From Macrostomum lignano (lineage: Eukaryota), in the NCBI GenBank assembly GCA_002269645.1, contig NIVC01002232.1, positions 1-64,000 on the forward strand: a stretch of DNA of 64,000 nucleotides, given 5' to 3'. Of this stretch, positions 1 through 56,758 are shown one piece after another (the stretch's first letter is position 1; every line of letters begins with the position of its first letter). The notes beneath the pieces are model-generated. The model was not told the origin of the DNA and made no database searches. It saw nothing but the letters and a program-made list of their open reading frames with translations. A program made the position numbers and the translations under genes.

Positions 1-57
1 GGCTTGATTTGGAGGTGGGTGGGTGTCAACCCTCCTCGCCTCTCATTGGCTGGCGCC

Positions 58-94
58 CCGATCACTAGGTGATCGATACCCGTATCGATATCGG
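58..94. other. Outer T-shaped hairpin (mirror copy ~8681-8717)
   Basis: CCG-ATCAC TAG GTGAT-CGATAC CC GTATCG-AT-AT-CGG: two adjacent hairpins closed by CCGAT/ATCGG. Confidence 0.75.
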
Positions 95-143
95 CGACTC
101 GAACCCGCGACCCTCCCCAGCCGCAGGCGCACCTACCGATATT

Positions 144-203
144 AGATCCCAATAAATCAATCAGATCCCAAATCAATCAGATCCCAAATCAATCAGATCC
201 CAA
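144..203. repeat. 16-bp direct repeats AGATCCCAAATCAATC (about 3.5 copies; mirror ~8572-8630)
   Basis: Read directly from the sequence. Confidence 0.9.
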
Positions 204-4349: not shown

Positions 4350-4424
4350 TATTCACAGCAAGAGCTTCCTGCCGATGGCGCCATCGCCTGCGGCGATCGG
4401 TGCTGCAGGATGCGCTGCAGGATG
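4350..4424. other. Central asymmetric spacer able to fold into a bulged stem capped by a T/Y-shaped hairpin
   Basis: CCG-ATGGCGCCAT-CGCCTGCGGCG-AT-CGG (4372-4400) gives two short arms on a CCG/CGG stem; flanks TATTCACAGCAAGAGCTTCCTG and CAGGATGCGCTGCAGGATG pair only partly. Confidence 0.75.
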
Positions 4425-8631: not shown

Positions 8632-8682
8632 ATATCGGTAGGTGCGCCTGCGGCTGGGGAGGGTCGCGGGTTCGAGTCGCCG
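8632..8682 (+). other. tRNA/SINE-like segment with Pol III B box inside the palindrome arm (mirror ~93-143, minus strand)
   Basis: atcggtaggtgcgcctgc...gggtcgcgggttcgagtc resembles the D-arm to T-arm of a tRNA; a second B-box-like motif gcgacctgggttcgattt lies at ~8407-8424. No complete cloverleaf. Confidence 0.45.
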
Positions 8683-8789
8683 ATATCGATACGGGTATCG
8701 ATCACCTAGTGATCGGGGCGCCAGCCAATGAGAGGCGAGGAGGGTTGACACCCACCCCACCTCCAAAATCAAGCCATACGGAATCCCTT

Positions 8790-18819: not shown

Positions 18820-19770
<951 letters not shown>

Positions 19771-21360: not shown

Positions 21361-24300
21361 ATGGCATCATTTCAACAGCTTCTGCTGCTCCTAGCAGCAG
21401 CAACAGCAACAGCTGCAGCAATGGTCGCATCGCCGACACCGTCGGATGTCGTCCTAGACGAGGAGCTGCCACCGGGCAGCCAGCCCGCCGAACTGCGTCA
21501 GGCGTTGATTCAGCGCGGCCTGGACAGCCCCGGATGCTGCGTCATGATCCCGCCTCATCCGTACTTCGAGTACACCGCCAACGAGGCCGCGGCCCGCGCC
21601 GAGCTGACGGTCAAGAAGCGCCTGGACCGCGAGTCCATGTGCCCCGACGCCGGCCTCTGCTGCAGCTCGGCCGAGCTGATCTGCCAGCTCAAGCTGCACT
21701 TCCTCGACCGTCGGCAGTCGGGCGCACCCCGGGAGATCGTCCTGACCGTCGGGATTCGTGACATCAACGATCACCGGCCCGTCTTCCCGGAGGCCGAGCG
21801 CCGGATTCAGGTCAGCGAGGACGCCCCGCCGGGTCAGCTGGTCCGCCTGCCGCTGGCTTCCGATCCGGACTCCGACTCCAACTCAGTCAGGGACTACTCG
21901 CTGCTGCCGAGGGTCGGTGTCTTCGGCCTGCGCGAGGACCGGGCCGGCTCTGGCAGGGTGACCCATCTGTCACTCGAGCTGCTGCACAGGCTGGACAGGG
22001 AGGCCCAGCCGGTGCACAATCTGACCCTGGTGAGAGCCACTGCATCACCCACTCCATCACCCACTGCATCACACACTGCATCACCCACTCCATCACTCAC
22101 TCCATCACCCACCCCACCACTCCATCACCCACTCCATCACCCACTCCAGCACCCACTCCATCACCCACTCCATAACCCACCCCACCACTCTATAACCCAC
22201 CCCACCACTCCATCACCCACTCCATCACCCACTTCATCACCCACCCCATCACCTACCCCACCACCCACTCTATATCCCCAGGTTGCCACAGACATCGACG
22301 GCCAAAACGCCAGCCTCCGCCTCATCGTGAACGTCACGGACGTGAACGACAACCGGCCGCAGTTCCACCCAACCGGCCACCGGACTGTCCGAGTTCGCGA
22401 GTCCGACCCGGCCGGCAACTGTCCGGTCCAGCTGTCGGCCACCGATCCGGACAGTGGCGAGAATGGCCGAGTAATCTTCGAGCTGGACCCGCACCAGCCG
22501 GACCTGGCCGCGGTCGATGCCAACTTTCGCGTGTCGCCATCGAGCGGCTTCATCTGCCTTCGTCGGAGTCTGGACTACGAGACTAAGGAGATCTTCGAGC
22601 TGTCCGTCATCGCCAGGAATCCCACGCCGATCAGAGGCGACCCTGGAGCTGGCGGAGCTGGCAGCCGGCTGGCGACGGCCACCGTGACGGTGCTGGTTGT
22701 TGATGAGAATGATGAGGCGCCCCAGCTGCAGCTGGACTATCTGGATGGGACAGCGGAGGTGTGAACTGGATTTGGGGTCTTCGGTAATCTAAAAAGTCCA
22801 CAATGAATAAACTGTTACCAATCAGTCGCCAATCAGTCACCAATCAGTCACCAATAAGTCACCAATCAGTCACCAATCAGTCACCAATCAGTCACCAATC
22901 AGTCACCAATCAATCACCAATCAGTCACCAATCACCAATAAGTCACCAATCAGTCACCAATAAGTCACCAATCAGTCACCAATCAGTCACCAATCAGTCA
23001 CCAATCAGTCACCAATCAGTCGCCAATCAGTCACCAATCAGTCACCAATAAGTCACCAATCAGTCACCAATCAGTCACCAATCAGTCACCAATCAACCAC
23101 CAATCAGTCACCAATCAGTCACCAATCAGTCACCAATCAGTCACCAATCAGTCACCAATCAGTCACCAATCAGTCACCAATAGTCACCAATCAGTCACCA
23201 ATCAGTCACCAATCAGTCACCAATCAGTCACCAATCAATCACCAATCAGTCACCAATCACCAATAAGTCACCAATCAGTCACCAATAAGTCACCAATCAG
23301 TCACCAATAAGTCACCAATCAGTCACCAATAAGTCACCAATCAGTCACCAATCAGTCACCAATCAGTCACCAATCAATCACCAATCAGTCACCAATCAGT
23401 CACCAATCAGTCACCAATAAGTCACCAATCAGTCACCAATAAGTCACCAATCAGTCACCAATCAGTCACCAATCAGTCACCAATCAGTCACCAATCAGTC
23501 ACCAATAAGTCACCAATCAGTCACCAATAAGTCACCAATCAGTCACCAATAAGTCACCAATCAGTCACCAAACAGTCACCAATAAATCACCAATCAACCA
23601 CCAATCACCAATAAGTCACCAATCAGTCACCAATCAGTCACCAATCAGTCACCAATAAGTCACCAATCAGTCACCAATAAGTCACCAATCAGTCACCAAT
23701 AAGTCACCAATCAGTCACCAATCAATCACCAACCAGTCACCAATCAGTCACCAATCGATCACCAATAACCAATCAGTCACCAACAAATCAACCCAGGTAA
23801 CGGAGAACGACCGCCGAGGCCACACCTTGGCGGCCCTGCAGGCCACGGACAGGGACCGGGGCGACAACGGCCGGGTGAGCTGCCAGATCGACCAGCCCGA
23901 CCTGCGCGACGTCTTCGAGCTTCTGCCCACCGCCGGCTCAGCATCCGCCGGCGCTTCATCCGGTCAGCCGCAGCGCTGGCGATTCTACCTGGGCACCAGA
24001 GACGGAGGTCCCGGACTCGATCGCGAGGCCCACCTGAAACTCGGACCGACAGCGGCTCACCGAGAAGCCGTCCGACTCAACGTCGGCATCGTCTGTCGCG
24101 ACGGCGGCCAACCGGCCAATGTCCGGTTCGCCAACGCCTCCGTGCTCATCGGTGACGTCAACGACAATGCGCCAGCGCTGCGGCTGGTCCGGTCTGCCGC
24201 TGCCGCTACAGCAGGCGGCGGTGACAAAGACCTCTTAGCTTCGGCCAGCGTGCCCGAGAACCGTCCGCCCGGCTTCCACGTCGCCAAGCTCGACGCTCAC

Positions 24301-25898
24301 GACCTCGACTTCGGCGTCAACGGCTCAGTGGCGTTCGCGCTCGATCCGGCTGGCACCGACACTTTGGCGCTGGACGCCTTCGACGTTCGAAGCGATGGCT
24401 TGTTGGTCACCCGACGGACGCTCGATCGAGAGTCGGCGATGCCGCCCATAGACAGCTTCCGGGTAGCCGTGATGGCGCACGACCGGGGCAGCGCCGTCCG
24501 GCTCAGCTCCGCCCTGACGCTCCACGTCCGCCTGATCGACGAGAACGACAACGCGCCGGTCATCCTGCCGCTGGCCGGATCTGCGGCGGCGGTCGCCGGC
24601 GCCGGGCTGGAGTTCCGCCTGGCGGAGAACAACAAAGCCGGTGCCGCTGTCGGCCGCCTGCGCGTCGTGGACGCCGACTTCGGACCGGACGAGGCCGACT
24701 GGCGACGGCGTCGGCGTCGGGTCTCGCTGTCACCGGCGGCGGCTTCGAGTTCGACGCCTGGTGGCGGCGCTCGGTTGCCATTTCGAGTGCGGCCGTCGAC
24801 AGGCCCCGACCCGGACGAGTTCATCATCGAAGCGACGGACGTGCTGGACGCGGAGCGCCAGGCCGAGTACCGCTTCCTGCTGCTGGCCAGCGACGGTCAG
24901 CACTCCTCCAGCTGCAATGTCACTGTCATCGTCGAGGACGTCAACGACCACCCGCCGAAGATCTTCTATCCATGCAGCGGCAGCGGCGGCAACCGGAGCT
25001 CGAGCTCCGTCCGCCGCCAGTTGCTGAGGAACCACAGCGTCTCCTGGCGCGAGCCGGTGGGCTACACGGTGCTGAAGGTCAACGCCAACGACGAAGACTT
25101 TGACAAGACTGGGAACGGCAGGTTCCAGTTCAGTCTGCGGGAGGCCCCGGCCGCCGGACAGTCTGGTGACGCCGTCCGGCCACTGTTCAGCGTCGATCCC
25201 GACGGTGGGCAGATCCGGGTGGCCGCTCGCATGACCGGCCGAGACCGCGGCGTCCGGCGCCTGACAGTGACAGCGACCGACCGAGGACAGCCGCGGCCGC
25301 TGGCCACCGAGTGCGTCTTCGACGTGACGGTGGACAGCTCGGAGCCGAGAAGCCAAGCAGCCTTGGCGCCGCGTCTCGGCGAAGATGGAGGAGGAAGAGA
25401 CGGTGGCGGCGTGTTCACCCAGGTGCCGCCGATGCCACGTCAGAAGCAGCAGTTCGGAGACTCTGTCGTGCTGGCCGTTGTTGGCATTTTCGCGCTGCTG
25501 TTGCTATTGGCAACGGTGCTGCTGCTGCTGTACGCCAGGCATTGGCACGCGGCGCCGGGCTTCCTGCCAGACGTGCTGGGCGCCTGCTTCGGCAGGAGGG
25601 AGCAGCGGAGCCAGGCGGGCCGTGGCGGCGGCGGTGGCCGCGGCCGCAAGTCCGCTGAATCTGCCGAGGCTGCTGGAGCGGCCTTTCTCGGGGTCAAGTC
25701 GGGTCAGCCGGATCAGCTGAGATCCAGGCCGCTCAGTCAGGTTAGTTGGGTAGTTAGTTACTTAGTTAGTCAGTTACTTAGTTAGTTAGTTAGTTAGTTA
25801 GTTAGTCAGTTAGTTAGTTATTTAGTTAGTTAGTTATTCAGTTAGTTAGTTAGTTAGTTAGTCAGTTAGTTAGTTAGTTAGTTAGTCAGTTAGTTAGG

Positions 25899-25935
<37 letters not shown>

Positions 25936-28900
25936 GGTTATTTAGTTTCCCCATTTCCCCAGCACAGTTAAGGATGGCCAGCTGGGTTGTTTCAAGCAAT
26001 TAAATATTAAATAATGGTTGAAAAGCCAGGCACAGCTGGCATATAAAATGCTCTCAATTGAAGTGTGAAAATTGCCCCGTTCTCGCAATCCAACCTGAAG
26101 GGGAAAATTGGTGGTCGCAGTGCTGCAAGCGATGAGGAAAAACTGCACTAAACAGCCGGTGCTTACATTGCAGCATCAATTTCAGAATTTGAGTTAAACT
26201 CTGTTCCAGCGCATTATGAATTCTAGCCAGAGTAAATAGGGGTGCACGGACCAGATGGCCCTTAGGTAGTGTTATCATTGGTAAGCTCTTTAACACCAGG
26301 AATGATCCTTTTAAACTCCAATAACTCAGGCTGTAGACTCCAATGCTTCAGGCTGTAGACTCCAATGCTTCAGGCTGTAGACTCCAATGCTTCAGGCTGT
26401 AGACTCTAGTACTTGAGGCTGTAAACTCCAATATTTCAGGCTGTAGACTCCAATACTTCAGGCTGTAGACTCCAATACTTCAGGCTGTAGACTCCAATAC
26501 TTCAGGCTGTAGACTCCAATACTTCAGGCTGTAGACTCTAGTACTTGAGGCTGTAAACTCCAATACTTCAGGCTGTAGACTCTAGTACTTGAGGCTGTAA
26601 ACTCCAATACTTCAGGCTGTAAACTCCAATACTTCAGGCTGTAGACTCCAATACTTCAGGCTGTAGACTCCAATACTTCAGGCTGTAGACTCCAATACTT
26701 CAGGCTGTAGACTCTAGTACTTGAGGCTGTAAACTCCAATACTTCAGGCTGTAGACTCTAGTACTTGAGGCTGTAAACTCCAATACTTCAGGCTGTAAAC
26801 TCCAATACTTCAGGCTGTAGACTCCAATACTTCAGGCTGTAGACTCCAATACTTCAGGCTGTAGACTCTAGTACTTGAGGCTGTAAACTCCAATACTTCA
26901 GGCTGTAAACTCCAATACTTCAGGCTGTAAACTCCAATACTTCAGGCTGTAGACTCCAATACTTCAGGCTGTAGACTCCAATACTTCAGGCTGTAGACTC
27001 TAGTACTTGAGGCTGTAAACTCCAATACTTCAGGCTGTAGACTCTAGTACTTGAGGCTGTAAATTCCAATACTTCAGGCTGTAGACTCCAATGCTTCAGG
27101 CTGTAGACTCCAATACTTCAGGCTGTAAACTCCAATACTTCAGGCTGTAGACTCCAATACTTCAGGCTGTAAACTCCAATACTTCAGGCTGTAGACTCCA
27201 ATGCTTCAGGCTGTAGACTCCAATGCTTCAGGCTGTAGACTCCAATACTTCAGGCTGTAAACTTCAATACTTCAGGCTGTAGACTCCAATGCTTCAGGCT
27301 GTAAACTCCAATACTTCAGGCTGTAGACTCCAATGCTTCAGGCTGTAGACTCCAATACTTCAGGCTGTAAACTTCAATACTTCAGGCTGTAGACTCCTAT
27401 GCTTCAGGCTGTAGACTCCAATGCTAAAAGCAGCACAGAACATCAAAAGTTTACAAACTTCAGCTTCAAAGCTCAGTCCACGCTGACCCAGAGAGATTTG
27501 ACCTCTGCAGCGCACAGCGCAATGCACAGATCTGTCACAGTTCGGCATGCAATCAAGTGAGATTTTGATTCGTCACAAGATCGCAGAGGGGCGCCCTGAT
27601 AGCTGCTGGTACATGCGGATGGTCTGTCCGTCTATCCGACCCCATCTTCATCAAGACCGGCTGTCAAATACTGCGAGTCGCGCAAACAGCTGACCTCAGC
27701 AGTTCACGCGGACACGGAAGCCCCACCGCCCGTGTCCTCCCCTCCTTTCTTAGTTTTGTCTTTTCTGCGAGAATCTTTTAAGCGCTGGTGTTTGTTTAAA
27801 AAATTGTGACTAGCTCGTAATAATATATATCTAAATGCAGCCCAAAATGGCGAAAACGAAGCGGGACGATGGGAGAGGTGAGGGTGAGAGGGGTGAGAGT
27901 GAGAGGGGTGAGAGTGGGAGAGGTGAGAGTGAGAGGGTGAGAGGGGTGAGAGTGAGAGGGGTGAGAGTGGGAGAGGTGAGAGTGAGAGGGGTGATAGGGA
28001 GAGGGAGAGAAGGGTGAGAGGGGTGAGAGGGGTGAAAGAGGTGGGAGGGAGAGGGGTGAGAGGGAGAGGGTGAGGGAGAGAAGGGTGAGAGGGGTGAGAG
28101 GGGTGAGAGGGAGAGAGTGAGAGGGAGAGGGGGAGGGGGAGAGGGGTGAGAGGGTGAAAGGGGTGAGAGGGAGACGGGTGAGAGTGAGAGAGGTGAGAAG
28201 GAGAGAGTTGCGAATGAGAGGGGTAAAAGGGAGAGGGGTGAGAGGGAGAGGGGTGAGAGTGAGAGGGTGAGAGGGAGAGGGAGAGGGAGAAAGGGAGAGG
28301 GGTGAGAGTGAGAGGGGTGAGAGTGAGAGGGGTGAGAGTGAGAGGAGTGAGAGTGAGAGGGGTGAGAGTGAGAGGGGTGAGAGTGAGAGGGGTGAGAGTG
28401 AGAGGGGTGAGAGTGAGAGGGGTGAGAGTGAGAGGGGTGAGAGTGAGAGGGGTGAGAGTGAGAGGGTGAGAGGGAGAGGGAGAGGGAGAAAGGGAGAGGG
28501 GTGAGAGTGAGAGGGTGAGAGGGAGAGGGGTGAGAGTGAGAGGGGTGAGAGTGAGAGGGGTGAGAGTGAGAGGGGTGAGAGTGAGAGGGGTGAGAGTGAG
28601 AGGAGTGAGAGTGAGAGGGGTGAGAGTGAGAGGGGTGAGAGTGAGAGGGGTGAGAGTGAGAGGGGTGAGAGTGAGAGGGGTGAGAGTGAGAGGGGTGAGA
28701 GTGAGAAGTATTAAGGGAAATATGTTACATTCGAGCTCAATGTAGTCAGTTGTTTTGTTTCAGAATTTCCAACATTTCCAAGTTGATCTGACAGATGAGG
28801 CGCTCAGCTTGATTCTGCAAGATTCCTAATTAATGGTTGCAGTGTATAACAGTTATAAGCATATTTGGTCTGCTTCTCTTTGTCCCTTCGATCTACCGCA

Positions 28901-39668: not shown

Positions 39669-42600
39669 TCACATTTTTGATTGCTGCTGGGCGGCGGTCT
39701 GCCACTTGCACATGAGCTGGTCGATATTCTTCTTTTGAAACACGCTGACTGGCTTCGATTTCTGCAACAAATTTAAAGAGAAAAATATTTCACTTTCTTG
39801 ACTTGAATGATTTGTCACTCTACTCTGTTAGAATCTAAACATCTAAGCTCACACTGATCGATTAGAGTGACAATGCCAAAGTCACACACAACCACCAGTG
39901 ACAATGCCAAAGTCACACCTATCCACCAGTGACACTGCCAACGTCACACCTATCTACCAGAGTGACAATGCCAAAGTCACACCCATCCAACAGAGTGACA
40001 ATGCCAAAGTCACACCCATCCAACAGAGTGACAATGCCAAAGTCACACACAACCACCAGAGTGACAATGCCAAAGTCACACCCATCCAACAGAGTGACAA
40101 TGCCAAAGTCACACCCAAACACCAGAGTGACAATGCCAAAGTCACTCAAACACCAGAGTGACAATGCCAAAGTCACACCCAAACACCAGAGTGACAATGC
40201 CAAAGTCACACCGAAACACCAGAGTGACAATGCCAAAGTCACACCCAAACACCAGAGTGACAATGCCAAGGCCACACCCAAACTGAGCTCTATCTCACCT
40301 TCCGCTTGACCGGCTGGCCACCAGGCGGTTCAACGTCCACCCAACGCGACGAGGCCGGATGCGCGCCGGCAGTCCCGGACGATCCCGACGTTGTCGCCGC
40401 CGCGAACAACATCGGGCTGCCGTCCAGATCGTCAGAGTCCTCAGCGTCAGCGGTGGCCGCTTCGCAGGCAGCGTCGTTAGAATCTTCATCGGCAGCTGTA
40501 GCGGCGGCGGCGGCCAACGCACTGTCGGTGTCGTAGGGTCGAACAGCGACCGACATATGCGAGGAGGCGAACGCAGCGGAGTTCGTTGACGAGGTGGTCG
40601 ATCGACTCGCCGACGAAGAACGCAGCACCACGGGCGGCGGCGGTGGTGGCGGCGGCGGCGGAGGCAGCGGCGGGAGGCCCGGCAGGGAGGGTCGCGGAGG
40701 ACGCGGAGGCGGCGGCAACGGCAAGCCGGCCTCGTCGCCGGAGTCCAACTCCATGCTGTCGTCGACAACTGCCGGGCCGAGGGCGGATTGGAGGGCAGAA
40801 GCCGGCGGAGTAGCGGCAGATGCGGACTTGCCGCTGGCAGCAGCTGTTTTAACATCATCTTTGGCGGTGTCGCCGGCGCTGTCAGAATCGGAGCTGTCGC
40901 TGTCCCGACCGTGATCGTAGCTGACCAGCCGCACTACATTGCCACCGCTGTCGCTCGGATCTTTATTGACGCCCTGGTCTGCAGCATCAGCCGCCGCAGC
41001 TTCCGGCGCGGCCGCGGGCTGGCCGGGGAATTCCCACTGGGCCTCGCCAGTGCGGACGCTCTGATAATAATAGGCGGCATTGGCCGGGTCCCACAGGCAC
41101 AGCCAGCCGGCTGGGCAGTCGGCCTGCACCCGACGCTGGCAGGCTTCGGCAGCCTGGGCGACACGAGATTCGTAGTGCGCGACGCTGATCGCGCCGTCTT
41201 CGAGATCGCGTAGACGAGCGCGAGCTTCAATGGCGGCGATGAGGAGAGGCGAAGCCTGGTCTGGATCGTGGCCGAAGTAGCTGGACTGGGCGGCCAGGGT
41301 AGCGGCCGACTGCCTGCAGCTGGTGAGCCGGTCGATGTCCAGCAGCTGCGGTCGAATGGCCTGAAAGTTGGGCGGCAGAGCCGGCCCGATCACTGCCGGA
41401 CTCGCTGCCGCTGCCGGCTTCGTCTGCGACGGGGGCGGCGGCCGAACCGACGAAGGTGGCAGAGGCGGTGGCGGCGGCTGCTGCTGCTGTAGCGGCTTTT
41501 CCGTTGACCGCTCCCGCCGGTCACGGCTGCAGTGCATGGAAAGGAGATTTAATTTGTTGCTGTTTGTACTTTTTGGTAAGTGGTCCAGCAACTGAGGATC
41601 TGGGAGGCTGGCCCAGCAACTGAGGATCTGGGAAGCTGGCCCAGCAACGGAGAATCTGGGAGGCTGGCCCAGCAACTGAGGATCTGGGAGGCTGGCCCAG
41701 CAACTGAGGATCTGGGAAGCTGGCCCAGCAACGGAGAATCTGGGAGGCTGGCCCAGCAACTGAGGATCTGGGAAGCTGGCCCAGCAACGGAGAATCTGGG
41801 AGGCTGGCCCAGCAACTGAGGATCTGGGAAGCTGGCCCAGCAACGGAGAATCTGGGAGGCTGGCCCAGCAACTGAGGATCTGGGAAGCTGGCCCAGCAAC
41901 GGAGAATCTGGGAGGCTGGCCCAGCAACTGAGGATCTGGGAGGCTGGCCCAGAAACTGAGGATCTGGGAGGCTGGCCCAGAAACTGAGGATCTGGGAGGC
42001 TGGCCCAGAAACTGAGGATCTGGGAGGCTGGCCCAGCAGCTGAGGATCTGGGAGGCTATGCAGTCCTATAGAAGGAAGCAGTCTTCAAGAATTTACCTGC
42101 GTTTCCCCTCTTCATCCTCGGACCCTTTGTTATGCTTGCGAGATTTTTTGGAACGCTCGCGCCTGCTTTTATCCCGATGCGGTCGGCGCTCTTTCTTCTT
42201 CTTTTTCCCGGAATGCTTCTTGTGCTTGCCAGTAGAGCTTTTCTTGGCCTTCTTAGACGGCGGCGGCGAGTCGGCAGAGGCGTGCCGCGAAGCTTTTAAA
42301 GAGCGGCGCTTTCGCGAATTGAGGGAAGAGGAGGCTGCGGATGGAGAAGAGGAAGCCGACGACGACGAAGAAGAAGAAGAGGTGTCGCTTAACTCGCCCG
42401 AGCTGCTCTGGTTGCCGGCGGCGTTGCTGCTAATAAAACAGTCGAATTGGAATTTGAGAATGCTAAGAGAATGTTGTCGGTTATTCTCTGCAATACGAAT
42501 TCAAGTCACCATCATATTCGTAAAAAATATTGTTAGATCTCTACTTACAGTAGGCTAAGTATGTCTTTTACTATTTTACTATAGTCAATAACGCATTAGC

Positions 42601-44385
42601 TGCCTGCGTCAGCAAAGTTAAGCAGAGCTGGTCGCGGTTAGTACGCTACGCATCCGGGCGGGCAAGCGTGCCCCACTGGTGAAATTTAGGTCTTGTAAAA
42701 GCAGCAGATTTCTCATTTTTGCAACTATAACAAGAGCAAAAAATGACTGATTAACACATGTTATACCTCTTTGGAGCAGAAGGCAAATCCTTGCCATAAT
42801 CCGGCTGTGAAGTTTGTGACGAATCAGCTGGAGCAAAAAACAAACGAGTTTATTGTACAACTAAATTAGGAAATTAGGAACTAATAAAGCCACTCCTTCG
42901 ACTCCTTCGATTTTAAATCCTTTTAATTTGTTAAAAACTCACGAATTGCTTCCAAGGAGCTGCTGGTTCCTTCGCTGCTTTTCTTAATGCTGGCCAACTC
43001 CTATTAAACCAATGCAGATTGTTTCGACTAGGATTTCAGTTATAATGATGCATATATTTGGTATATCATAAAAACAGTATTCTCACCGCAAGGAAATTCT
43101 CCAAGGCGGAGTTGACATTGTCCGCTGAAATAATAATTTTTTAACGCCCTTAGAATTCTAGTATTATGACATCGTTCATCTCAATAAAAGTACATTTTAT
43201 AACCTTTACAAAATCAACAGTATAATTAATTTGTTAATATGCATATCCTAAATAACTGGTCAAATTCTGAAAGATAAAAGTTGTCAAAAAGCAGAGCGTT
43301 TACTTTTTAGTCAGTAATTTGTCTGCGCAGTGTCACTTCCTAGGGTGCAGTCCTAATCTAGCTCAGCCAATGAGAGAGCGGTAAGGAGAGAGGTCAGAGT
43401 CAGACGGACGAAACTCAGTCTAGGGGGGCAGGCCCAATCTGGTTCAGCCAATGAGAGAGCGGTAAGGAGAGAGGTCAGAGTCAGACGGACGAAACTCAGT
43501 CTAGGGGCACTCCTAATCTAGATCAGCCAATGAGAGAGCGGTAAGGAGAGAGGTCAAAGTCAGACGAACGAAACTCAGTCTAGGGGCACTCCTAATCTAG
43601 ATCAGCCAATGAGAGAGCGGTAAGGAGAGAGGTCAAAGTCAGACGAACGAAACTCAGTCTAGGGGGGCAGGCCCAATCTGGTTCAGCCAATGAGAGAGCA
43701 GTAAGGAGAGAGAAAAACAATGGAATTTCAAAATGTTGACTCGTGCGCATGCCTAAACGACAAAAAAGCACTTGTGGTAGTCGATTATTATTGAAGACGA
43801 CATATCGGACTTTTTTCTTGCTTTTCACTGAATAAAAAATGACTTGTCTTTTCTGAAATTCTCTTGTCAAGACTTTTATGAGATTTCCAGACCAAACATT
43901 TCATGCAGAGAAAGGCTTTGAAGAATGCTTTTTCACTTTCGCGTATGAATAAAAATCACATTTTTCTCGAGATCTGAATAAAAAACTTGAGTTTTCCACG
44001 AGCACCTCCCAATCTACACAATCTACCATTGCGTACCGCTTAAGGATTGTCTTGATGATTTGGCCATAGACAAAGTTTCACAGCTTGGATAAAAAGACCA
44101 GAAAAAAATCTAGAAGATAGGACGACCATAGACAATGAATTTCCTTGATTTAATACTATTTTAATGAGACTGTTCTCCTAGGCAGTTCTTCTATGCCTCC
44201 TCTTTGGACAGTGTGAGAAAGTTCGTTTTGATACACTTTATTTATACTGTCTGTCAATGATTTCTATTTTCAATATTTCCAACTGTTTACACCTGTACGT
44301 CTAATCATTCTCAAGCCTAAGCCTGTATTGTGCTATTAAGTAAACATCTGTAATATCAAAGACACTTACACTTCGAAGCGGACAT
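39669..44385 (-). CDS. FNBP4: FNBP4 (formin-binding protein 4)-like WW-domain protein; exons 44370-44385, 43087-43124, 42943-43000, 42767-42827, 42650-42724 (uncertain), 42097-42429, 40299-41526, 39669-39761
   Basis: ARLRDLEDGA...CPAGWLCLWDPANAAYYYQSVRTGEAQWEFP matches the FNBP4 helical+WW region; N-terminal SALENFLAEL and C-terminal KKNIDQLMCKWQ also resemble FNBP4 motifs; poly-Pro tract; all junctions GT-AG with consistent phases. Confidence 0.8.
39865..40282. repeat. 33-bp minisatellite (agtgacaatgccaaagtcacacccatccaacag) in the last FNBP4-like intron
   Basis: Array reaches to ~15 nt of the donor at 40298; each unit carries GTGAC-n9-GTCAC. Confidence 0.95.
41580..42056. repeat. 28-bp minisatellite (gaggatctgggaggctggcccagcaact) filling an FNBP4-like intron
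   Basis: Occupies most of intron 41527-42096; source of the repetitive N-terminus of ORF 40290..41927. Confidence 0.96.
43355..43710. repeat. 79-81-bp tandem repeat (about 4.5 copies), each with cagccaatgagag
   Basis: Unit starts at 43364, 43445, 43524, 43603 and 43684. Confidence 0.93.
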
Positions 44386-45062: not shown

Positions 45063-48007
45063 TCACAGATTGTACATGGGCGGCTTGGATTTGAGATGTC
45101 GGCCACGGCTGCAGGAAGCAAATGCGCCAACCCGGCTACTCATATCAGTAGTAGTATTATTAGCATGCGCCTCGTAAAATTAGAGCGGGCAAAGCATCGG
45201 GTTGAATCGCTTTTTGGAGGGCCGAGCGAAACAAGCGGCCAACGGCAAAACAGCCGGGTTGATCGGCAGCGTGTCGAGTCCACAGGCACAGCCGGTAGTG
45301 CCGGGAGCGGATCTGGGCGCCAAGGGGAGAAAGGAGATAAAAGAGGTGACGATTAGAAAAGAGAATAGTGTTATTGAGGCCACTTTAGGGAGATCCTTAA
45401 ACTGGTGGAGGCTTAGGGTGATTCCTAAATTGATCAGGTAGGGAGAGGGGCGATTCCTAACATAAACAGGCAGGGGCGATTCCTAAAATAAACAGGCAGG
45501 GAGAGGGGCGATTCCTAAATAAACAGGCAGGGGCGAATCCTAAAATAAACAGGCAGGGGCGAATCCTAAAATAAACAGGCAGGGGCGAATCCTAAAATAA
45601 ACAGGCAGGGGCGAATCCTAAAATAAACAGGCAGGGGCAATTCCTAAAATAAACAGGCAGGGAGAGGGGCGAATCCTAAAATAAACAGGCAGGGAGAGGG
45701 GCGAATCCTAAAATAAACAGGCAGGGAGAGGGGCGATTCCTAAAATAAACAGGCAGGGGGCGAATCCTAAAATAAACAGGCAGGGAGAGGGGCGAATCCT
45801 AAAATAAACAGGCAGGGAGAGGGGCGAATCCTAAAATAAACAGGCAGGGAGAGGGGCGATTCCTAAAATAAACAGGCAGGGGGCGATTCCTAAAATAAAC
45901 AGGCAGGGAGAGGGGCGAATCCTAAAATAAACAGGCAGGGGGCCGATTCCTAAATAAAACAGGTAAGATTTAAAAATGGCAACTCCTGTACACCCTAAAA
46001 AGGCTAAATTCCCTTGTTAATAATCTGAAACAATAAACCCACCTGAACAACCAGACCGCAGATCTGTCGCCCAACCCGATCGGAGAAGTCTTCTCCAATA
46101 GCCATCAGCAGAGCCTCAGTCCAAGCCTTATCTACCAGAGCTGCCTCGGTCGAACGTCTGTCTAAGCTGAGCATCCAACGGCCGCCGTTGCAATTATCAG
46201 GCGCCTCCCACATGGGCGGACAGCCGGCCCTGAACACGGAATAATCGCATCCAGGAGGCAGCCGACTTGGCGGCATTGCAAAGTTGATGATGCGCCAGAA
46301 ATCTTCGACGCTTGAGAAATTGGCCACAGGTAGTTGGCTGTCCAGCCAGACACGGCTGCGATCGCTCTTGTAGAACCACAGGGTCCAGCTGGTGGATTGA
46401 GGGAGCGCCGCGGCAGATTAGTTGGTGGCTGTTAGTGTTTAACTACTACTGCGAGTAATAGGATGGGGCATAAGGGGGATTTTTGAGATTTATTCGTTAT
46501 AGTAGTTCAGAGGCGATTCTTTTAAAGATCAGGGGCGATTTTTTTAAAGATTCAGGGGCGATTCTTTTTAAAGACTCAGGGGCGATTCTTTTAAAGATTC
46601 AGGGGCGATTCTTTTTAATGATTCAGGGGCCATTCTTTTAAAGATTCAGGGGCGATTCTTTTTAATGATTCAGGGGCGATTCTTTTTAACGATTCAGGGG
46701 CCATTCTTTTAAAGATTCAGGGGCGATTCTTTTTAATGATTCAGGGGCGATTCTTTTAAAGATTCAGGGGCGATTCTGTCGGAGATTCAGGGGCGATTCT
46801 GTTGGAGATTCAGGGGAGATTCGGTTGGAGATTCAGGGGCGATTCTGTTTGAGATTCAGGGGCGATTCTGTTGAAGATTTAGGGGCCTGTTGGAGATTCA
46901 GGGGCGATTCTGTTAGTGATTCAGAGACGATTTAGACCGGAAGCGAATATAAGCGGACAGTACTTCCATGTATCAACCATACTGACATGCAGCACTGACA
47001 CTTACCAGCTATTTAGCAGATGCTTCTCCATCAGTGGTTCAACAAGTGCATCGCTGGCGGCATCTTCAGCATTCGTACTAGTGGAGCATTCACCAGCGGC
47101 TTCGCAAACGCTATTACAATCCAATGTAGACGAACTATCCGTATGCTCTGAGTTGCCTTCTGCACCAGCTTTGGAAGAGCTTAAGCCTGATTCTTCTTCG
47201 GTATTGTGGCAACTTTCGGTCAGTTTTGGTTGGTCAGCAACTAGAGATCTTTTGCTTCCGTCTTCTTTCTTGTACTTTGTAGAGCTATCAATTGGCTCAT
47301 TGGATGAGCTTCTGCTAAGGTCTTTGTTTTCGGCAATGAAGATTTCGGTCAGCCCTTTGTTTTCAGCAAGGAAGCTTCTGATCAGTTCTTTATTGTTCTC
47401 AATGGAGCTTCCGGTCAGCTCTTTGTTGTCAGCAATGGAGCTTCCGGTCAGCTCTTTGTTGTCAGCAATAGAGCTTCCGATCAGTTCTTTGTTTTCGGCA
47501 ATGGAGCTTCCCGTCAGCTCTTTGCTTTCAGCAAGGGAGCTTCCGATCAGCTCTTTGTTGTCAGCAATGAAGCTTCCAGTCAACTCTTTGTTGTTGGCAA
47601 TGAAGCTTCCAGTCAACTCTTTGTTGTTGGCAATGGAGCTTCCCGTCAGCTCTTTGTTTTCAGCAAGGGAGCTTCCGATCAGCTCTTTGTTGTCAGCAAT
47701 GAAGCTTCTAGTCAGCTCTTTGTTGTTGGCAATGAAGCTTCCAGTCAACTCTTTGTTGTTGGCAATGGAGCTTCCAGTCAGCTCTTTGTTGTCAGCAATG
47801 AAGCTTCCAGTCAGCTCTTTGTTGTCAGCAATGAAGCTTCCGATCAGTTCTTTGTTGTCAACAATGGCGCTTCCGGTCAGCTCTTTGTTGTCAACAATGG
47901 CGCTTCCGGTCAGCTCTTTGTTGTCAACAATGGCGCTTCCGGTCAGCTCTTTGCTGTTAACGATTGAATCAGCCCTGTTAGTAGCAGCAAAAATGCTTGC
48001 AAATGAT
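45063..48007 (-). CDS. eIF4E: Divergent eIF4E-family cap-binding protein with a long N-terminal repeat extension; exons 47006-48007, 46043-46388, 45063-45312 (1-nt frameshift at 45176-45179); first exon(s) not located
   Basis: Spliced KHLLNSCWTLWFYK...RVW...VEDFW...PPMWE...GGRW...DKAWTEALLMAIGEDF...ICGLVVQ|IRSRHYRLCLWT...VGRLF keeps all eight conserved Trp positions of class I eIF4E. Junction phases are consistent. Confidence 0.85.
45440..45960. repeat. 26/32-bp minisatellite (ggcgaatcctaaaataaacaggcagg[gagagg]) in an eIF4E intron
   Basis: Tandem units visible. Confidence 0.95.
46515..46912. repeat. 23/24-bp minisatellite (attcaggggcgattcttttaaag) in an eIF4E intron
   Basis: Tandem units visible. 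Confidence 0.95.
47330..47960 (-). repeat. Coding 33-nt/11-aa repeat (KELTGSSIADN) x ~19 in the eIF4E N-terminal exon
   Basis: Stop-free on the minus strand, in frame with KHLLNS; units vary mostly conservatively. Confidence 0.8.
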
Positions 48008-48699
48008 CTGAAAAATGCACCGCAAATCTCTTTAATTGGGAAAAGCTTCTGTAACCTAATGTATCTGAAGACTGAGCACTTCTCTCGTAAGTAGTCTATT
48101 ATGAATTTTTCAACTAAAATATGAGTGGAATGATAAAATTAAATGAAGAAAACAATATGTCGATGGAATTAGTTGAGCAAATCAAAAAAATCTTTTGCTG
48201 ATAAAATGTCTTCTATTTATTTCCGCTGCAAACAAGATACTGCTGCAATAAAACTTCTGTTAATAATATCTCCAAATTTTGAAGCAGACTTGGAACAGTA
48301 CTTTAATAATCAATTAAATATAAGCAATAGACAAGGAATCTTGCACAACAAAGACAAGAGAACAGATTCACAATATAACACAGCGATTTGCAACAAAGAC
48401 CAGAGTAGTAGTATGTATGCAGCGATAAGGAAACACCATTGTCCTTCAAGAAGCAAAAATTACTGTCGTATTTTCAAAAAGACAAATATAATGGAAGACA
48501 ACGTAATGCAACATGTAATACAGAGGAAGAGTTTAAACAAAGCAAGTTAGTTCGACTGCACTGCTGTCACAAGACTGGAGTCTTTGTTAAATTAGCTAGA
48601 AAGCATTTTACACTATTGGTTATGGAATACAATGCAGACTAATACAGCATTTGCGGGAAATACAAAAGTTATGGCCCGATCTCTAATTAGGATATTGTT

Positions 48700-48965
48700 C
48701 GGGGCGATTAATCTCCCTAGGGTATATTCACGGGCGATTAATCTCCCTAGGGTATATTCACGGGCGATTAATCTCCCTAGGGTATATTCAAGGGCGATGA
48801 ATCTCCCTAGGGTATATTCACGGGCGATTAATCTCCCTAGGGAATATTCACGGGCGATTAATCTCCCTAGGGAATATTCACGGACGATTAATCTCCCTAG
48901 GGTATATTCACGGGCGATTTCTTCCAAAGGATCTTCAGGGTAACTAGCAGAAGGCGATTAATCTC
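48700..48965. repeat. 30-bp minisatellite (gggcgattaatctccctagggtatattcac)
   Basis: About 7 tandem units. Confidence 0.95.
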
Positions 48966-51250: not shown

Positions 51251-52573
51251 CTAAACGTAGCGATATGGCGGATGCCCGTCGCCTCGTCGCTGCTGGTCGG
51301 ACTGATGACCGCGGAACACGGAGCCATTTTTAGCGGCGCGCGATTCAGCCTCCAGCGTCATCACCGGGATCACCATAGACGGTGATGCGTGCAAAGCAGA
51401 CGGATCGTTATTGATCATGTCGGCGTCGGACTTCACGTAGGGCAGCAATTTGATGCGCTGAGCCTCGCGATTCTGATCATATTTGGCTTTGTTATAAAGC
51501 AGTACGCCAAGAATGGCCATGCCCATGCCAACACAGTTGGCCGTAGTGACGGGATTTTGTAGTATCACAAGAGACATTAGGATCACGGCGATGCGTTTGC
51601 TAGCATTGGCCACGGCATACGATAGCGGAGTGACTAATGCGATCATGGTGAACGCGATCACGTTCTGGGCAAAGTTAAGAAAGCCGTCCAGCAGCAAAAG
51701 GCCAACTACCCAAGTCCAATCCGTGCCAGCCATGGAGTCCCAGTTCGACAGGACGTAGCGAACGTCAAATATTAGCCAGACAGGCAGAAACAAGAGACAG
51801 GAGATTCTGGCCAACACCAATAGCAAGCGAATGTGATGCATTCGAGTCTCTTTAAGACACTTCTTTGAGAACACGTTCTGCAGAGAGAAAGCCAAAGTAG
51901 CTAACAGTGCGCTAAGCAAGCCGGTGATGTCGAAGCTGAGCTCAGTTAGTGTGGCAATAATTACTCCAGTGACTATTGGCGTTAACGACAGGTACACTAG
52001 CCAAGTCTGGCGTTCGCGCAAGATAATTCTAGACAGGAATACAACAAATATTGGCATAGAAGCTTTGACTGTGTGCGCGTAGCTAATCGGCACTTTCCAG
52101 ATCGATATGTGAGCCGACACGGCGGCAATGAATTTGCCAAATGCCAACGGAACAATCATAGTGGCGTAATAGCGCCAGCCTATTAAATTCCATCGCACTG
52201 GCGGCACGCGCCAATACATGGCCAGCGGCTGGCTAAACAGAGCAGTTGATAACAACTGGAACAGAGTGGCCGTGGCCGGATAGGGATAATAAGTTAGCAG
52301 ACTCTTCCCAATTATGTTATTAGTTGAGCTGACTGTGTACCAGCACAGGCACAGGAACAATACTTTGCAGCACAGCATAGCATTGTCCTTGTCGCAGCCC
52401 GCATCGTCTTCGGCATCGCCGCCGCCGGGGTGCTGCGAAACCATCGGGACTGAGTGCTTTGCTCCACCGCGCCTGTCCTCAATGTCGCTCTCTGATAGGT
52501 CCGGCATCTCGGCATCGTCGCCATCAGAGATGGTCCGCGATCCGCCAAAGCGGGCCTTTTTAAATACCGGCAT
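51251..52573 (-). CDS. SLC35E1: SLC35E1-like nucleotide-sugar/triose-phosphate transporter family protein, 440 aa, intronless CDS
   Basis: CLCWYTVSSTNNIIGK, SIWKVPISYAHTVKASMPIFVV, LATLTELSFD, FSLQNVFSKK, ANASKRIAVI motifs; multiple TM segments; first ATG at 52573. Confidence 0.92.
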   Translation of the reverse strand: MPVFKKARFGGSRTISDGDDAEMPDLSESDIEDRRGGAKHSVPMVSQHPGGGDAEDDAGCDKDNAMLCCKVLFLCLCWYTVSSTNNIIGKSLLTYYPYPATATLFQLLSTALFSQPLAMYWRVPPVRWNLIGWRYYATMIVPLAFGKFIAAVSAHISIWKVPISYAHTVKASMPIFVVFLSRIILRERQTWLVYLSLTPIVTGVIIATLTELSFDITGLLSALLATLAFSLQNVFSKKCLKETRMHHIRLLLVLARISCLLFLPVWLIFDVRYVLSNWDSMAGTDWTWVVGLLLLDGFLNFAQNVIAFTMIALVTPLSYAVANASKRIAVILMSLVILQNPVTTANCVGMGMAILGVLLYNKAKYDQNREAQRIKLLPYVKSDADMINNDPSALHASPSMVIPVMTLEAESRAAKNGSVFRGHQSDQQRRGDGHPPYRYV

Positions 52574-53681
52574 TAAAGTATTGGCTGGCAATAAGATAGG
52601 ATTGTTGGGAATTAATTGGCAGTTAAGCACAGAAGTTAGTTAAGAAGAGATTTAGTATATTGTGAAATCAACTGTGCCAAGTAAGGCGCCTTCTAGTTGC
52701 ATTTTATCTTTTAAGAATAAAAATCATTTTAGGATAGGCTGTTCAACATTAGTAGACAGACTAATCCATAAAGTACTAACATTGCTACTCATAGTAATAT
52801 ACTACTACTTCTCTAATAAGTAAAATTCTAGATTTTTTTAATGTCAAGCTGCTTATTTAATTTATTTTGTATTGAAGGGGGGCGATTTTAAACCATTTTA
52901 TTTAACTACTAAATCCGATTTTGAGGCACATTGACTAATCTTTTGCTAATTTGACAATTTAAAACAATTTCTAATCTAATTTTAAAGTCATTCTTTCTAT
53001 AACATTGAAAGTAAAATAATAAAGCCAATTTCTAATCATTATCATTTCCTCAAACTTTGAAATTTTAGATAAAAGCTATAAAAAGCTTTACAGTTTTTCA
53101 ACTTTTAGAAAAAGTAAGTATTTAAGTATGTTACTATTTTTAAGGATGATCACTGGATACTGCTAGTATAATATGACATTAGTTAAGATTTTATACTCTT
53201 TAAAGGAAACAAAAGACAGCTGGCAAAAAAGAACTATGCTAGCAAAATGTCACTTTAGTTTTTCTGGTTTTTTACTACCCTCAATATTATTTGCCATAAC
53301 CTACTTTGCCAAACTAGTTCATTTTATAGAAAGGTTTTGCTCTATGTGAGTTGATTTGAGTCAGTTTTATTTGCTGCTTCTATTACATATGACATACAAC
53401 TAGTATCTTTCTGTAGCTACAGATATGGCTATGGGAAGTTATGCATATGGAGTATTTTATATAGAACATATAGACACAAGTATTGTTATAGAATATAGTT
53501 CACATGTCTAGCTCTCATATTTAATAATATTGAGGCTACTTAATAACTGAGACTTAAAAGACTTAAAAGACCATTGGCAGCCTTCATTTCATGGGTGAGG
53601 AAAGATAAAAAATAGAGCAAAATGGACTTAAGCAACAAAATTTTTTCAACATTACATTTATGCACAATGTATAGTTCAAGT

Positions 53682-54411: not shown

Positions 54412-56758
54412 CTAGCAATCTTCGCCCCCCGATGGGGGACATCTGGATAGAATCTTTGTTCTTTACAAGTAACAAATAGACAACGAAAAAACAGCAGACA
54501 TTTCCTCTAAAAAGAAAACATCCCAAGACAGCAAGCATCCCCAGACAGCATGCAAGCATCCCCAGACAGCATGCAAGCATCTCCCCCATAGCAAGCATCC
54601 CCCCAGATAGCAAGCTCCCCCCAAATACAATAGCAAGAAGCATCTTCCAGATAGCAAGCATCATCCAGATGGAAACCCCTCCCCCCAAGATAGCAAGTAC
54701 CCCCCCCCCAAGAGCAAGCCTCTTGCCTCCCCAATATCAAGCATCCCCAGACAGCATGCAAGCATCCCCAGACAGCATGCAAGCATCCCCCAGATAGCAA
54801 GAACCCCCCCCCCCCCCCAGATAGCAAGCATCCCCCTGATAGCAGTAATATATCCTTAAATAGCAAGCATCCACCAAGACAACAAGTAGCTAGTGCAATA
54901 ATATCCTTCGTTTTATAGTGGCCCCTTTATGTTTCGCATGAAGCTGCTTTTTACATTTGAAATGGTGGCTCTATTATGTTTGACATGGTGGCTCTTTAAT
55001 GTTCGACATGGAGTCATGTATATGTTTCACATGGTAGCTCTTTAATGCTTGACATGGTGGCTCTTTAATGTTTGGCATGGTGGCTCTCTTATGTTTGACA
55101 TGGTGGCTCTTTGATACTCGACATGTTGGCTCTTTAATGTCTGACATGAAGTCACGCATATGTTTGACATGGAATCATGTATATGTTTGACATGGTGGCT
55201 CTTTTATGTTTGACATGGTGGCTCTTTAATGTTCGACATCGTGGCTCTTTAATGTTTGACATGGTGCTCTTTAATGTTTGACATGGTGGCTCCTTAATGT
55301 TCGACATGGAGTCACGTATATGTTTGACATAATTGCTTTTTTACTTTTGACATGATGGCTCTTTTACGTTTGAAATGGTGGCTCTTTTACGTTTGAAATG
55401 GTGTCTCTGTTATGTTTGACATGGTGGCTCTTTAATGTTTGACATGGTGGCTCTTTTATGTTTGCCATGGCGGCCCTTTTACGTTTGAAATGGTGTCTCT
55501 GTTATGTTTGACATGGTGGCTCTTTAATGTTTGACATGGAGTCACGTATATGTTCGACATAGTGGCTCTTTTATGTTCGAAAAAGTGGTTCTTTAATGTT
55601 CGACATGGTGGCTTTTTAATGTTTGACGTGGTGGCTTTTAATGTTCGACATGGTGGCTCTTTAATGCTCGACATGGTGGCTCTTTTAAGTACGACAAAGT
55701 AGCTCTTAATGTTTGACATGGTGGCTCTTTAATGTTCGACATGGTGGCTCTTTTATGTTTGACATGGTGGCTCTTTTATATTCGACATGGTGGCTCTTTA
55801 ATGTTCGACAAAGTGGTTCTTTATTGTTCGACATGGTGGCTCTTTAATGCTCAATATGGTGGCTCTTTTAAGTACGACAAAGGGGCTCTTGAATGTTTGA
55901 CATGGTGGCTCTTTAAAGTTCGACATGGTGGCTCTTTTATGTTTGACATGGTGGCTCTTTAATGTTCTACATGGTGGCTCTTTTATGTTTGACAAGGAGT
56001 CACGTATATATAATTTATATGGAGTCACAAATATGTTTGACATTGGAGTCACATATGTGTTTGACATGGTCGCTCTTTAATGCTCTATATGGTGGCTCTT
56101 TTATGTTTGACATGGTAGCTCTTTAATTTTCGACATGGTGCCACTTGTATGTTTGACATTGTGCTTCTTTTCTGTTTAGCAGTTTCGTATTTTCAAGGTG
56201 TTTTAATAAAAAAATTATTTTGCACTACCAAGATTCGAACCCAGGTCGCTACATTGGCAGTCAAGTCTGTTCGTATCTAGGCTATCTCTTTTAGATTGGA
56301 GTACATGAATTGTGGCCCTTATAATTCAATTCTTACAGCAAGTCAATTGGAGTAAAATTATGACATAATCAATTTCTCAGTCAGCCAGTATCAGTCTCAA
56401 TTCAAGTTAGCAATATTGGTTACACAATTTAAATCAAGTCGTGTGTGCATTTCTTAAACACTGTTTTCAATTTGCTGTGATGTAATCTTTATTAGAATTG
56501 AAATTCAGTCAGTCAGGTTTTTCTCTAGCATTCTTACAATGCATTTCAAGTCGAAAATTTTGCTTGACCTTTGCAAAAAAGCATGTTTTTCGAATATTTA
56601 ATCCCTTTAACATTGAGCAATTTCTTAGCCAAGATGCATGTACCGTCCCAGGAAAATTTCTGACCGAATGGTGCAAATTTGAAGAAAATCGGTTGAGCTT
56701 TTTTTTCTGAAATCTATCGCATAGCTAGATACAGACTAATCATTTTTAGTATATACGA
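54412..56758 (-). mobile_element. Non-autonomous Helitron copy A (2.35 kb)
   Basis: On the minus strand: 5' TCGTATATACTAAAAATG, 3' hairpin (54424-54440) then CTAG followed by T. Internal 18-bp and 23-bp arrays and a tRNA-like SINE (56225-56285); homologous to copy B. Confidence 0.85.
54950..56160. repeat. 23/24-bp array (atgtttgacatggtggctcttta) inside Helitron A; inverted counterpart 58890-59860
   Basis: Read directly from the sequence. Confidence 0.95.

Follow-up and report, generated by a model that had tools for sequence, protein, structure and literature searches.

Can a tandem repeat become the N terminus of a core translation factor? This question is raised by a eukaryotic class I eIF4E gene of Macrostomum lignano, encoded on the minus strand of contig NIVC01002232.1 (assembly GCA_002269645.1), in which a long exon filled with a 33-bp minisatellite is joined to an eIF4E core. 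The window, i.e. the whole stretch of DNA analyzed, comprises the first 64 kb of this contig, and all coordinates refer to it, with the features of the gene lying on the minus strand. As argued below, we consider it likely that this is a syntenic-copy eIF4E gene with a tail encoded by a coding minisatellite, and that the window copy is a decaying duplicate. The gene is discussed in none of the papers searched, and its identifiers occur in no paper text and, among the supplements, only in that of PMC7336406.

The eIF4E domain corresponds to the C-terminal 170 residues of the spliced product (joins 47006-46388 and 46043-45312), with the first join reading ...HLLNS-C-WTLWFYK.... It matches the Pfam IF4E family (PF01652) with E=1.3e-42 and 145.6 bits, against a cut-off of 28.7, over positions 2-149 of the 158 in the profile; the frameshift of the window copy accounts for the missing end. 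A sequence search of the PDB returned human and mouse eIF4E with E=2e-38. Together with the Pfam domain, this confirms the assignment to the eIF4E family made by an earlier reading of the letters alone (the sequence-only reading). In a word-index search, the core was 43% identical to the best eIF4E matches. Because this search, run with the core alone, missed the M. lignano proteins, its negatives are unreliable and an exhaustive HMMER search was used. Among the best 150 HMMER hits, no eIF4E from outside M. lignano was more than 51% identical to the core over the matched stretches. AlphaFold2 models the core with a predicted local distance difference test (pLDDT) score of 80-93, a target template modeling (TM) score of up to 0.91, and a root mean square deviation of ~2 A against eIF4E structures.

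All eight conserved Trp are present in the HMMER alignment (human W43, W46, W56, W73, W102, W113, W130, and W166). In a 13-sequence alignment, W335, W338, W348, W365, W394, W405, and W460 are invariant, and the eighth is W423 (W130). Class I eIF4E are defined by Trp at human positions 43 and 56, two positions on which Joshi et al. reportedly based eIF4E classes in 2005. The stretches scWtlW and srvW align to W43/W46 and W56, respectively, and by Trp43 and Trp56 the predicted gene product is a class I eIF4E. As judged from the alignment, the cap-contact residues W56, W102, E103, R112, and R157 are identical to those of human eIF4E, Arg stands in for K162, and V69/W73 on the dorsal side are retained. 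The substitutions near the cap site that had been pointed out earlier are real features of the translation: 'FRAGCPPMWEAP' stands where human eIF4E has FKDGIEPMWEDE, which makes D104 an Ala, and the loop before W102 reads RAGCPP.

The core is preceded by the minisatellite, which spans 47314-47973. Its 20 in-register units are each exactly 33 nt (11 codons) long, and a higher-order repeat of 4 units is present among them. Tandem Repeats Finder (TRF) calls a 33-bp period at 47306-47957 (19.8 copies, 86% matches, 0% indels, score 835), and the unit is found nowhere else within the 64-kb window. The unit consensus GGAAGCTCCATTGCTGACAACAAAGAGCTGACC translates as GSSIADNKELT, which is a rotated form of the KELTGSSIADN motif that the sequence-only reading had rightly seen repeated ~19 times. 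Array and core are separated by a unique linker of 94 codons (47032-47313), which is acidic, Ser-rich, and predicted to be disordered, with an isoelectric point (pI) of 4.4; the array is also acidic (pI 4.5). From the AG|48007 acceptor to the 47006|GTAAGT donor, the frame of the tail is open for 333 codons, and the other sense frames contain 31 and 24 stops. The N-terminal extension of >330 aa proposed earlier therefore holds as an open frame. As a protein it does not hold in full, since the first 11 codons are 5' leader in the two sister copies described below, and exon 1 of the window copy has no in-frame ATG before MEKH (47029-47031).

A query with tail and core retrieved two clusters of M. 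lignano proteins, and three gene copies could be defined: the window copy, L002 (PAA67781.1, Mlig000110g1, complete, 509 aa), and L003 (PAA89473.1, Mlig031531g2). PAA59770.1 (BOX15_Mlig001559g2), marked 'partial', is identical in sequence to the window translation and has the same splice junctions; its contig matches the window exactly across the 10 kb compared. The copies are syntenic, with a downstream neighbor (~600 aa) common to all three loci and an upstream TPT-family transporter gene at the window locus and L002. They also have a common exon-intron layout, the intron lengths varying via minisatellites of the introns' own. In the window copy, exon 1 (47006-48007; 1002 nt) ends in ...AGCTG before a GTAAGT donor. 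Exon 2 (46043-46388) encodes the core from W43 to the residue before R157 and carries W56, V69/W73, W102/E103, and R112 (human numbering). The coding part of exon 3, as annotated (45160-45312), reads IRSRHYRLCLWT...ALILRGAC before a TAA at 45160-45162 and carries R157, K162R, and W166. Intron 1 (46389-47005) is 617 nt long, versus 1156 and 285 nt in the sister copies, and consists mostly of a 23-bp minisatellite (46506-46932, TRF); intron 2 (45313-46042; 730 nt) contains a 26/32-bp minisatellite (45416-45963). The M. lignano gene models come from a genome-guided RNA-seq assembly whose transcripts were cut where reads containing the spliced leader (SL) map (PMC5730564). Because the annotation is transcript-based, the 47006/46388 junction already has indirect transcript support, and the in-frame splicing of tail exon to core claimed earlier agrees with the junctions of PAA59770.1.

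Comparison of the three copies shows how the array evolves. There are 20 units in the window copy, 19 in L002, and 23 in L003, with no indels among these 62 units and an open frame in all three arrays. The consensus unit is GSSIADNKELT in the window copy versus GSSIENNKELT in the sister copies, and the higher-order patterns differ, with a repeated 4-unit block in the window copy, three occurrences of a 3-unit block in L002, and an alternation of V and G units in L003. These copy-specific patterns are ordinary minisatellite turnover after the copies diverged. Variants within the array are mostly non-synonymous and spread across all codon positions. The units at the edges are degenerate (ADSIxNxKELT for the first and EIFIAENKELS for the last), suggesting that the original N-terminal sequence gave rise to the array. 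Differing unit numbers, copy-specific higher-order repeats, and free residue variation fit best with what the sequence-only reading had offered as an alternative, namely a minisatellite that became coding sequence. In the coding part of exon 1, the copies differ in length only by entire 33-nt units and by a single 3-nt indel; alignments of window and sister copies contain 4-24 gap columns per 60-300 nt in flanks and introns. That 3-nt indel is the only one in the linker, which is open in all three copies. The linker shows a ratio of non-synonymous to synonymous substitution rates (dN/dS) of 0.27-0.31 between the window copy and its sisters, and the core one of 0.14-0.23.

Where the mRNA begins bears directly on whether the tail is coding. 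M. lignano trans-splices ~30% of its genes, using the acceptor motif [T/C]TNCAG and a 35-nt SL that ends in AUG (PMC8629364). A probable acceptor at 48008-48013, TTTCAG|A in the window copy versus TTACAG|A in the sister copies, matches this motif, and in both the window copy and L003 the 5'-partial coding sequence model opens with the first complete codon behind the acceptor AG. Motif fit and model starts together suggest that 48008/48007 is an SL acceptor, not a cis acceptor needing an upstream coding exon, and the 5' end of exon 1 is most likely the predicted trans-splice site. The gene is absent from the portions searched of the supplements flagging TRANSSPLICED genes. An upstream coding exon found no support, since the exon start fits the acceptor motif and the ATGs of the sister copies lie 31-32 nt inside the exon. 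In addition, the frame closes upstream at 48139-48141, and that of L002 shifts 5' of the ATG.

In both sister copies, the first repeat unit is immediately preceded by an ATG in the context actaacATGg, which gives a protein beginning MADSIINNKELT. PAA67781.1 (L002), which is annotated as complete, begins with this same MADSIINNKELT. The 5' leader of exon 1 measures 31 nt in the window copy (47977-48007). In an mRNA model with the SL joined at 48007, the SL AUG opens a 10-codon upstream ORF (uORF), MIICKHFCCY*, which stops 1 nt before the main start position. The SL AUG, with T at -3, lies in a weak context, and ribosomes could plausibly reach the main AUG by leaky scanning. In L002, a 1-nt deletion in the leader puts a TAA directly before the ATG and shifts the frame upstream of it, as expected for an untranslated leader. 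We also considered the SL AUG as initiator of the tail. This candidate was rejected, since only the 10-codon uORF results and the tail frame of the window copy reads UGA across the junction.

The window copy itself has AGG (47974-47976) in place of the initiator ATG, as seen in the three-locus alignment. Its first in-frame ATG lies at 47029-47031 (MEKHLLNS...), at the start of the eIF4E core. In the mRNA model, the SL AUG is followed by ~700 nt without AUG in any frame, then by five off-frame AUGs, and then by MEKH. A second lesion is found in exon 3, where a TTTT run (45176-45179) replaces the TTT of both sister copies (ATTTTAC versus ATTTAC), resulting in a +1 frameshift and a premature stop. 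The frameshift removes the last 33 residues. Whereas the window protein ends ...ALILRGAC, the sister copies continue IYEAHANNTTTNMSS...GRHLKSKPPMYNL, which aligns to the canonical IGYQSHADTATK...RFVV end of eIF4E, and their C termini keep IYEAHANNTTT...KPPMYNL. The complete eight-stranded sheet, including the C-terminal strands (human ~195-217), is thus present in L002 and L003 but absent in the window copy. The former C-terminal coding sequence persists out of frame at 45063-45175 (YEAHANNTTTDMSSRVGAFASCSRGRHLKSKPPMYNL, then a TGA at 45063-45065), and this stretch, corresponding to the last strands of the eIF4E fold, is still nearly identical to the sister copies, including the old TGA. A cryptic small intron behind the odd C terminus was rejected for lack of a usable donor, the sister comparison showing a 1-nt insertion instead. 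As a side observation, the T-to-G change that abolishes the start also creates TACTAACAG|G (47974-47981), a sequence resembling a branch point followed by an acceptor. It lies 34 nt past the normal acceptor, and the ML2-based UniProt model discussed below begins exactly behind it.

Are these two lesions genuine? Were the AGG and the extra T consensus errors, the window copy would be intact and encode a 521-aa tailed eIF4E. The assembly is indeed PacBio/Canu-based, homopolymer indels are a typical error, and the rest of the ORF is open, with a dN/dS of 0.14-0.31 against the sister copies (~20 changes, with no outgroup to assign them to a lineage). The near-identity of the out-of-frame 3' sequence and its shared stop codon would also fit an intact gene. 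However, Pilon polishing of the assembly drew on Illumina DNA and RNA-seq reads (PMC5730564), a T-to-G substitution is not a typical long-read consensus error, and mis-polishing from near-identical sisters would be expected to pull toward ATG and TTT. Two independent errors would, moreover, both have to strike disabling positions. Furthermore, the UniProt model A0A1I8GFI3 for the same allele, which is based on the older ML2 assembly, begins exactly after the AGG codon and not with Met. Polishing and the ML2 model start argue weakly that the changes are real, and we consider an intact window copy unlikely. The window copy is most likely a young, still transcribed, decaying duplicate. This fits a recently duplicated genome, in which duplicated blocks amount to 180 Mb and simple and tandem repeats to 15% of the DNA (PMC5730564). 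For annotation, this picture of the gene explains why the GenBank entry is marked 'partial'.

Next comes the question whether the tail is translated in the copies that have kept their start. Apart from that of the SL, the first AUG past the trans-splice site is in frame in two copies, with A at -3 and G at +4, and the ORFs observed behind this start context are 509 (L002) and 553 aa long. Translation of the tail would be the natural outcome. The sense frame is open in all three copies. A plus-strand ORF (46916-48094; 392 aa) spans the exon and was examined as an antisense gene, but it is open in the window copy only, with three stops in L002 and one in L003, and was dismissed as a chance mirror ORF. 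Alternatively, the repeat exon could be a long 5' untranslated region (UTR), i.e. a transcribed minisatellite, with a protein of ~206 aa made from M(E/K)KHLLNS in all copies. The M(E/K)KH AUG is conserved in the three copies and placed where canonical eIF4E cores begin, and the stop of the last uORF overlaps it (cTGATGg), an arrangement that can favor re-initiation. An unconstrained array, a linker whose dN/dS is not significantly below 1, and a window copy without an upstream in-frame AUG would all fit as well. Against a 5' UTR, scanning ribosomes should use the first good AUG, which in two of the three copies opens the 509- or 553-codon ORF, and to arrive at MEKH they would need to skip as many as 16 additional off-frame AUGs. 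The 94-codon linker, in addition, is stop-free in every copy, with a single indel of 3 nt. On balance, an untranslated repeat exon seems improbable to us.

Several observations nevertheless weigh against a translated tail and a decaying window copy. The linker gives no significant signal of purifying selection (6 synonymous and 9 non-synonymous events, P=0.09), unlike the core (11 and 9 events, P=0.002), and there is no sign of residue constraint within the array, so that translation of the tail is argued from the logic of the ORF. An open array is in itself weak evidence of coding: of the 99 single substitutions that the consensus unit can undergo, just 3 introduce a stop codon. In L003, 13 of the 23 units in the genome are missing from the annotated protein, which indicates that transcript assemblies of the array are unreliable, and some mRNAs or assemblies may be without the full array. 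The case for trans-splicing at 48008, for the precise structure of the mRNA, and for expression of particular copies comes from the annotation. As for the window copy, its ORF has remained open throughout and its dN/dS shows no increase, the AGG and TTTT could be assembly errors, and its loss of function, if real, is recent. With these points taken into account, a coding minisatellite tail and a decaying window copy remain our favored reading, and the gene family as a whole is a real lineage-specific variant of class I eIF4E. In a separate observation, some units in L002 and L003 (Val variants, starting with GTAAGC) contain ACC|GTAAGC, a fit to the 5' splice-site motif GT[G/A]AG of M. lignano (PMC8629364); no such unit is found in the window array. 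These units may allow splicing within the array, which would account for the 13 units missing from the L003 protein.

What the tail might do was approached by searches for motifs, relatives, and structure. A motif scan found no YxxxxL-phi motif in the three tails, and a regular-expression scan of the same tails found no match to strict or loose PAM2 patterns. In an exhaustive HMMER search of 1.84 billion cluster representatives, the tail had no relatives outside the two M. lignano clusters, within which orthologues >50% identical (e.g. from other Macrostomum) would be hidden. Matches elsewhere were rejected as unrelated low-complexity proteins, such as a Toxocara protein with a NAC-alpha domain, and Pfam matches within the repeat (CsoS2_M, DUF7016, and others) as compositional. 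AlphaFold2 gives the linker a pLDDT <50 and models the array, both in the full protein and alone, as 9-residue strands and 2-residue turns with a pLDDT of 60-86, a model based on almost no alignment depth. A fold search with the repeat-only model returned no meaningful PDB match (best E=0.098, query TM-score of at most 0.33). On the strength of the AlphaFold2 model, the repeat might be an ordered β-rich domain that confers a new property on a cap-binding protein, e.g. self-assembly into messenger ribonucleoprotein granules or the role of a rigid spacer. We think this very unlikely; if true, unit number would be a rapidly evolving tuning knob. The most fitting view of the tail is that of a lineage-specific, low-complexity addition to a normal cap-binding core, for the most part tolerated. 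It is acidic, is modeled as loosely β-rich or may instead be disordered, and may tune solubility, localization, or partner access.

Could this be a specialized eIF4E? The sequence-only reading had suggested a germline role or the recognition of trimethylguanosine (TMG) caps, brought about by the tail and the cap-slot substitutions (FRAGCPPMWEAP). With ~30% of M. lignano genes trans-spliced, TMG-capped mRNAs must be abundant, and the core is divergent, as shown by its identity of at most 51% to eIF4E of other species over matched stretches among the best 150 hits. Expression data are available for the sister copy Mlig000110.g1 (L002; 1530 nt, i.e. 509 codons plus stop), which has counts of 35, 18, 66, and 62 in fragments A-D, D being the whole worm. 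The expression level is modest, and counts rise slightly in the fragment that adds the ovary (log2 +1.6, not called significant). However, reads are already present in A, the first of four cumulative fragments, and a re-analysis of these positional RNA-seq data classes the gene as 'Non-Specific' (PMC7336406 Table S8), which leaves a gonad-restricted gene unsupported. Germline specialization is therefore not borne out. With regard to TMG caps, the cap-contact residues appear canonical in the alignment, the tail has no known docking motif, and there exist no signature residues for TMG binding with which to compare. In Ascaris and Schistosoma, moreover, a single ordinary-looking eIF4E binds both caps (PMC3203607; PDB 3M93 and 3HXG). 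A specialized function along these lines is, in our view, rather remote.

Under the reading that we favor, i.e. a coding minisatellite tail on a class I core, events would unfold as follows. SL trans-splicing onto the 48008/48007 acceptor would produce the mRNA. In the sister copies, scanning ribosomes would meet the good-context AUG 31-32 nt into exon 1 and read through 19-23 units and the 94-residue linker into a complete eIF4E fold. Units would be gained or lost by unequal exchange or slippage, the reading frame always surviving because the unit is 33 nt long, and the residues of the array would be barely constrained. In the window copy, normal scanning would yield no long protein; at best, ribosomes that pass six upstream AUGs might initiate at the MEKH AUG and make a little of a short eIF4E truncated at its C terminus. 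The window copy should thus be flagged as probably non-functional, which matters for the design of RNA interference, in situ probes, and knock-outs.

The surroundings of the gene add context. The upstream neighbor is a TPT/SLC35-type transporter gene (443 aa, Pfam TPT) at 51251-52582, on the same strand as the eIF4E gene. Its stop lies ~3.2 kb from the eIF4E acceptor, above the 1-kb operon threshold of PMC8629364; to judge by the '.g2' suffix in the name of the eIF4E gene, the annotators may have assigned both genes to a single transcription unit. The downstream neighbor (39669-43122, minus strand; 602 aa), conserved at all three loci and with no Pfam match on record, contains a 28-bp array (41581-42057) translated as a repeat (...GQPPRFSVAGPASQILSCWASLPDPQLL...) and a poly-proline tract. 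Non-coding minisatellites lie in intron 2 (45416-45963; 26/32 bp), in intron 1 (46506-46932; 23 bp), and upstream of the gene (48702-48919; 30 bp). These three share the plus-strand core GGGCGATT, an 8-mer of which 25 of the 26 copies in the window fall at 45-49 kb, with none on the other strand. This suggests a common origin or an expansion-prone seed.

Elsewhere in the window, minisatellite density is extreme (periods of 11-44 bp; 45 TRF rows with a score of at least 150), many arrays measuring 0.5-1.6 kb (e.g. 12515-14146, 26315-27422, and 54949-56177), and a (GACA)n tract of 237 copies spans 18820-19763. Two long GC-rich ORFs on the plus strand (21361-25785; 467 and 652 aa) contain DxNDxxP-type cadherin-repeat motifs and a transmembrane segment and, from these motifs, look like a protocadherin. 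They are broken by 11-12-bp arrays (22037-22270 and 22817-23783), one of which is translated as a PTPS/HHPL low-complexity stretch, and here, too, a tandem repeat may have come to lie within coding sequence. The contig opens (window and contig coordinates being the same) with a near-perfect palindrome (17-8757), which has arms of ~4.3 kb that are 99-100% complementary, a center near 4387, and identical 186-aa ORFs at 496-1056 (minus strand) and 7719-8279 (plus strand). It looks like a long-read hairpin assembly artifact rather than biology. An Rfam scan of the 64-kb window gave no match, i.e. no SL RNA or other RNA gene.

How does this gene compare with known systems? The N-terminal tail of eIF4E is usually ~35 aa long. 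With canonical class I eIF4E, such as human eIF4E1 and Drosophila eIF4E1, the M. lignano protein shares the fold, the eight Trp, and the cap-contact and dorsal residues. It differs by an N-terminal tail of 310-355 aa, by Arg at K162, Ala at D104, and the RAGCPP loop before W102, and, in the sister copies, by ~16 extra residues in a C-terminal loop; the window copy, in addition, lacks the start codon and the last 33 residues. Among trans-splicing animals, the eIF4E of Schistosoma mansoni and Ascaris suum bind both m7G and m2,2,7G caps (PDB 3HXG/3HXI and 3M93/3M94; PMC3203607). Both are class I proteins and homologues of the M. lignano core (E=3e-26 and 2e-35, respectively). Unlike the M. lignano protein, for which cap binding is predicted from the alignment, they have short N termini.

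Coding minisatellites are known from exons with a variable number of tandem repeats (VNTR), e.g. in mucins and involucrin. As in VNTR exons, the unit length in M. lignano is a multiple of three, unit number varies between copies, residues are little constrained, and higher-order repeats point to recent unequal exchange. Unlike in VNTR exons, the array sits at the extreme N terminus of a housekeeping-type translation factor, within a repeat-rich genome and in a gene both of whose introns are also filled with minisatellites. A very minisatellite-rich genome would have expanded a tandem repeat inside the coding region of a core translation factor and retained it in two or more expressed copies. 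The gene offers a natural experiment on how large an N-terminal burden eIF4E can bear.

The closest architectural parallel is found in trypanosomatids, organisms with SL trans-splicing in which EIF4E3 and EIF4E4 likewise carry a long N-terminal extension before the core (PMC6379680). In the same source, the extension of Leishmania eIF4E4 is described as acting through a PAM2 motif that binds PABP1. By contrast, the M. lignano tail is a tandem repeat with no PAM2-like motif and no homologue found elsewhere, and the resemblance is architectural only, not by descent. If the tail is translated and functional, M. lignano would provide a second, independent N-terminally extended eIF4E in a trans-splicing organism, after that of trypanosomatids.

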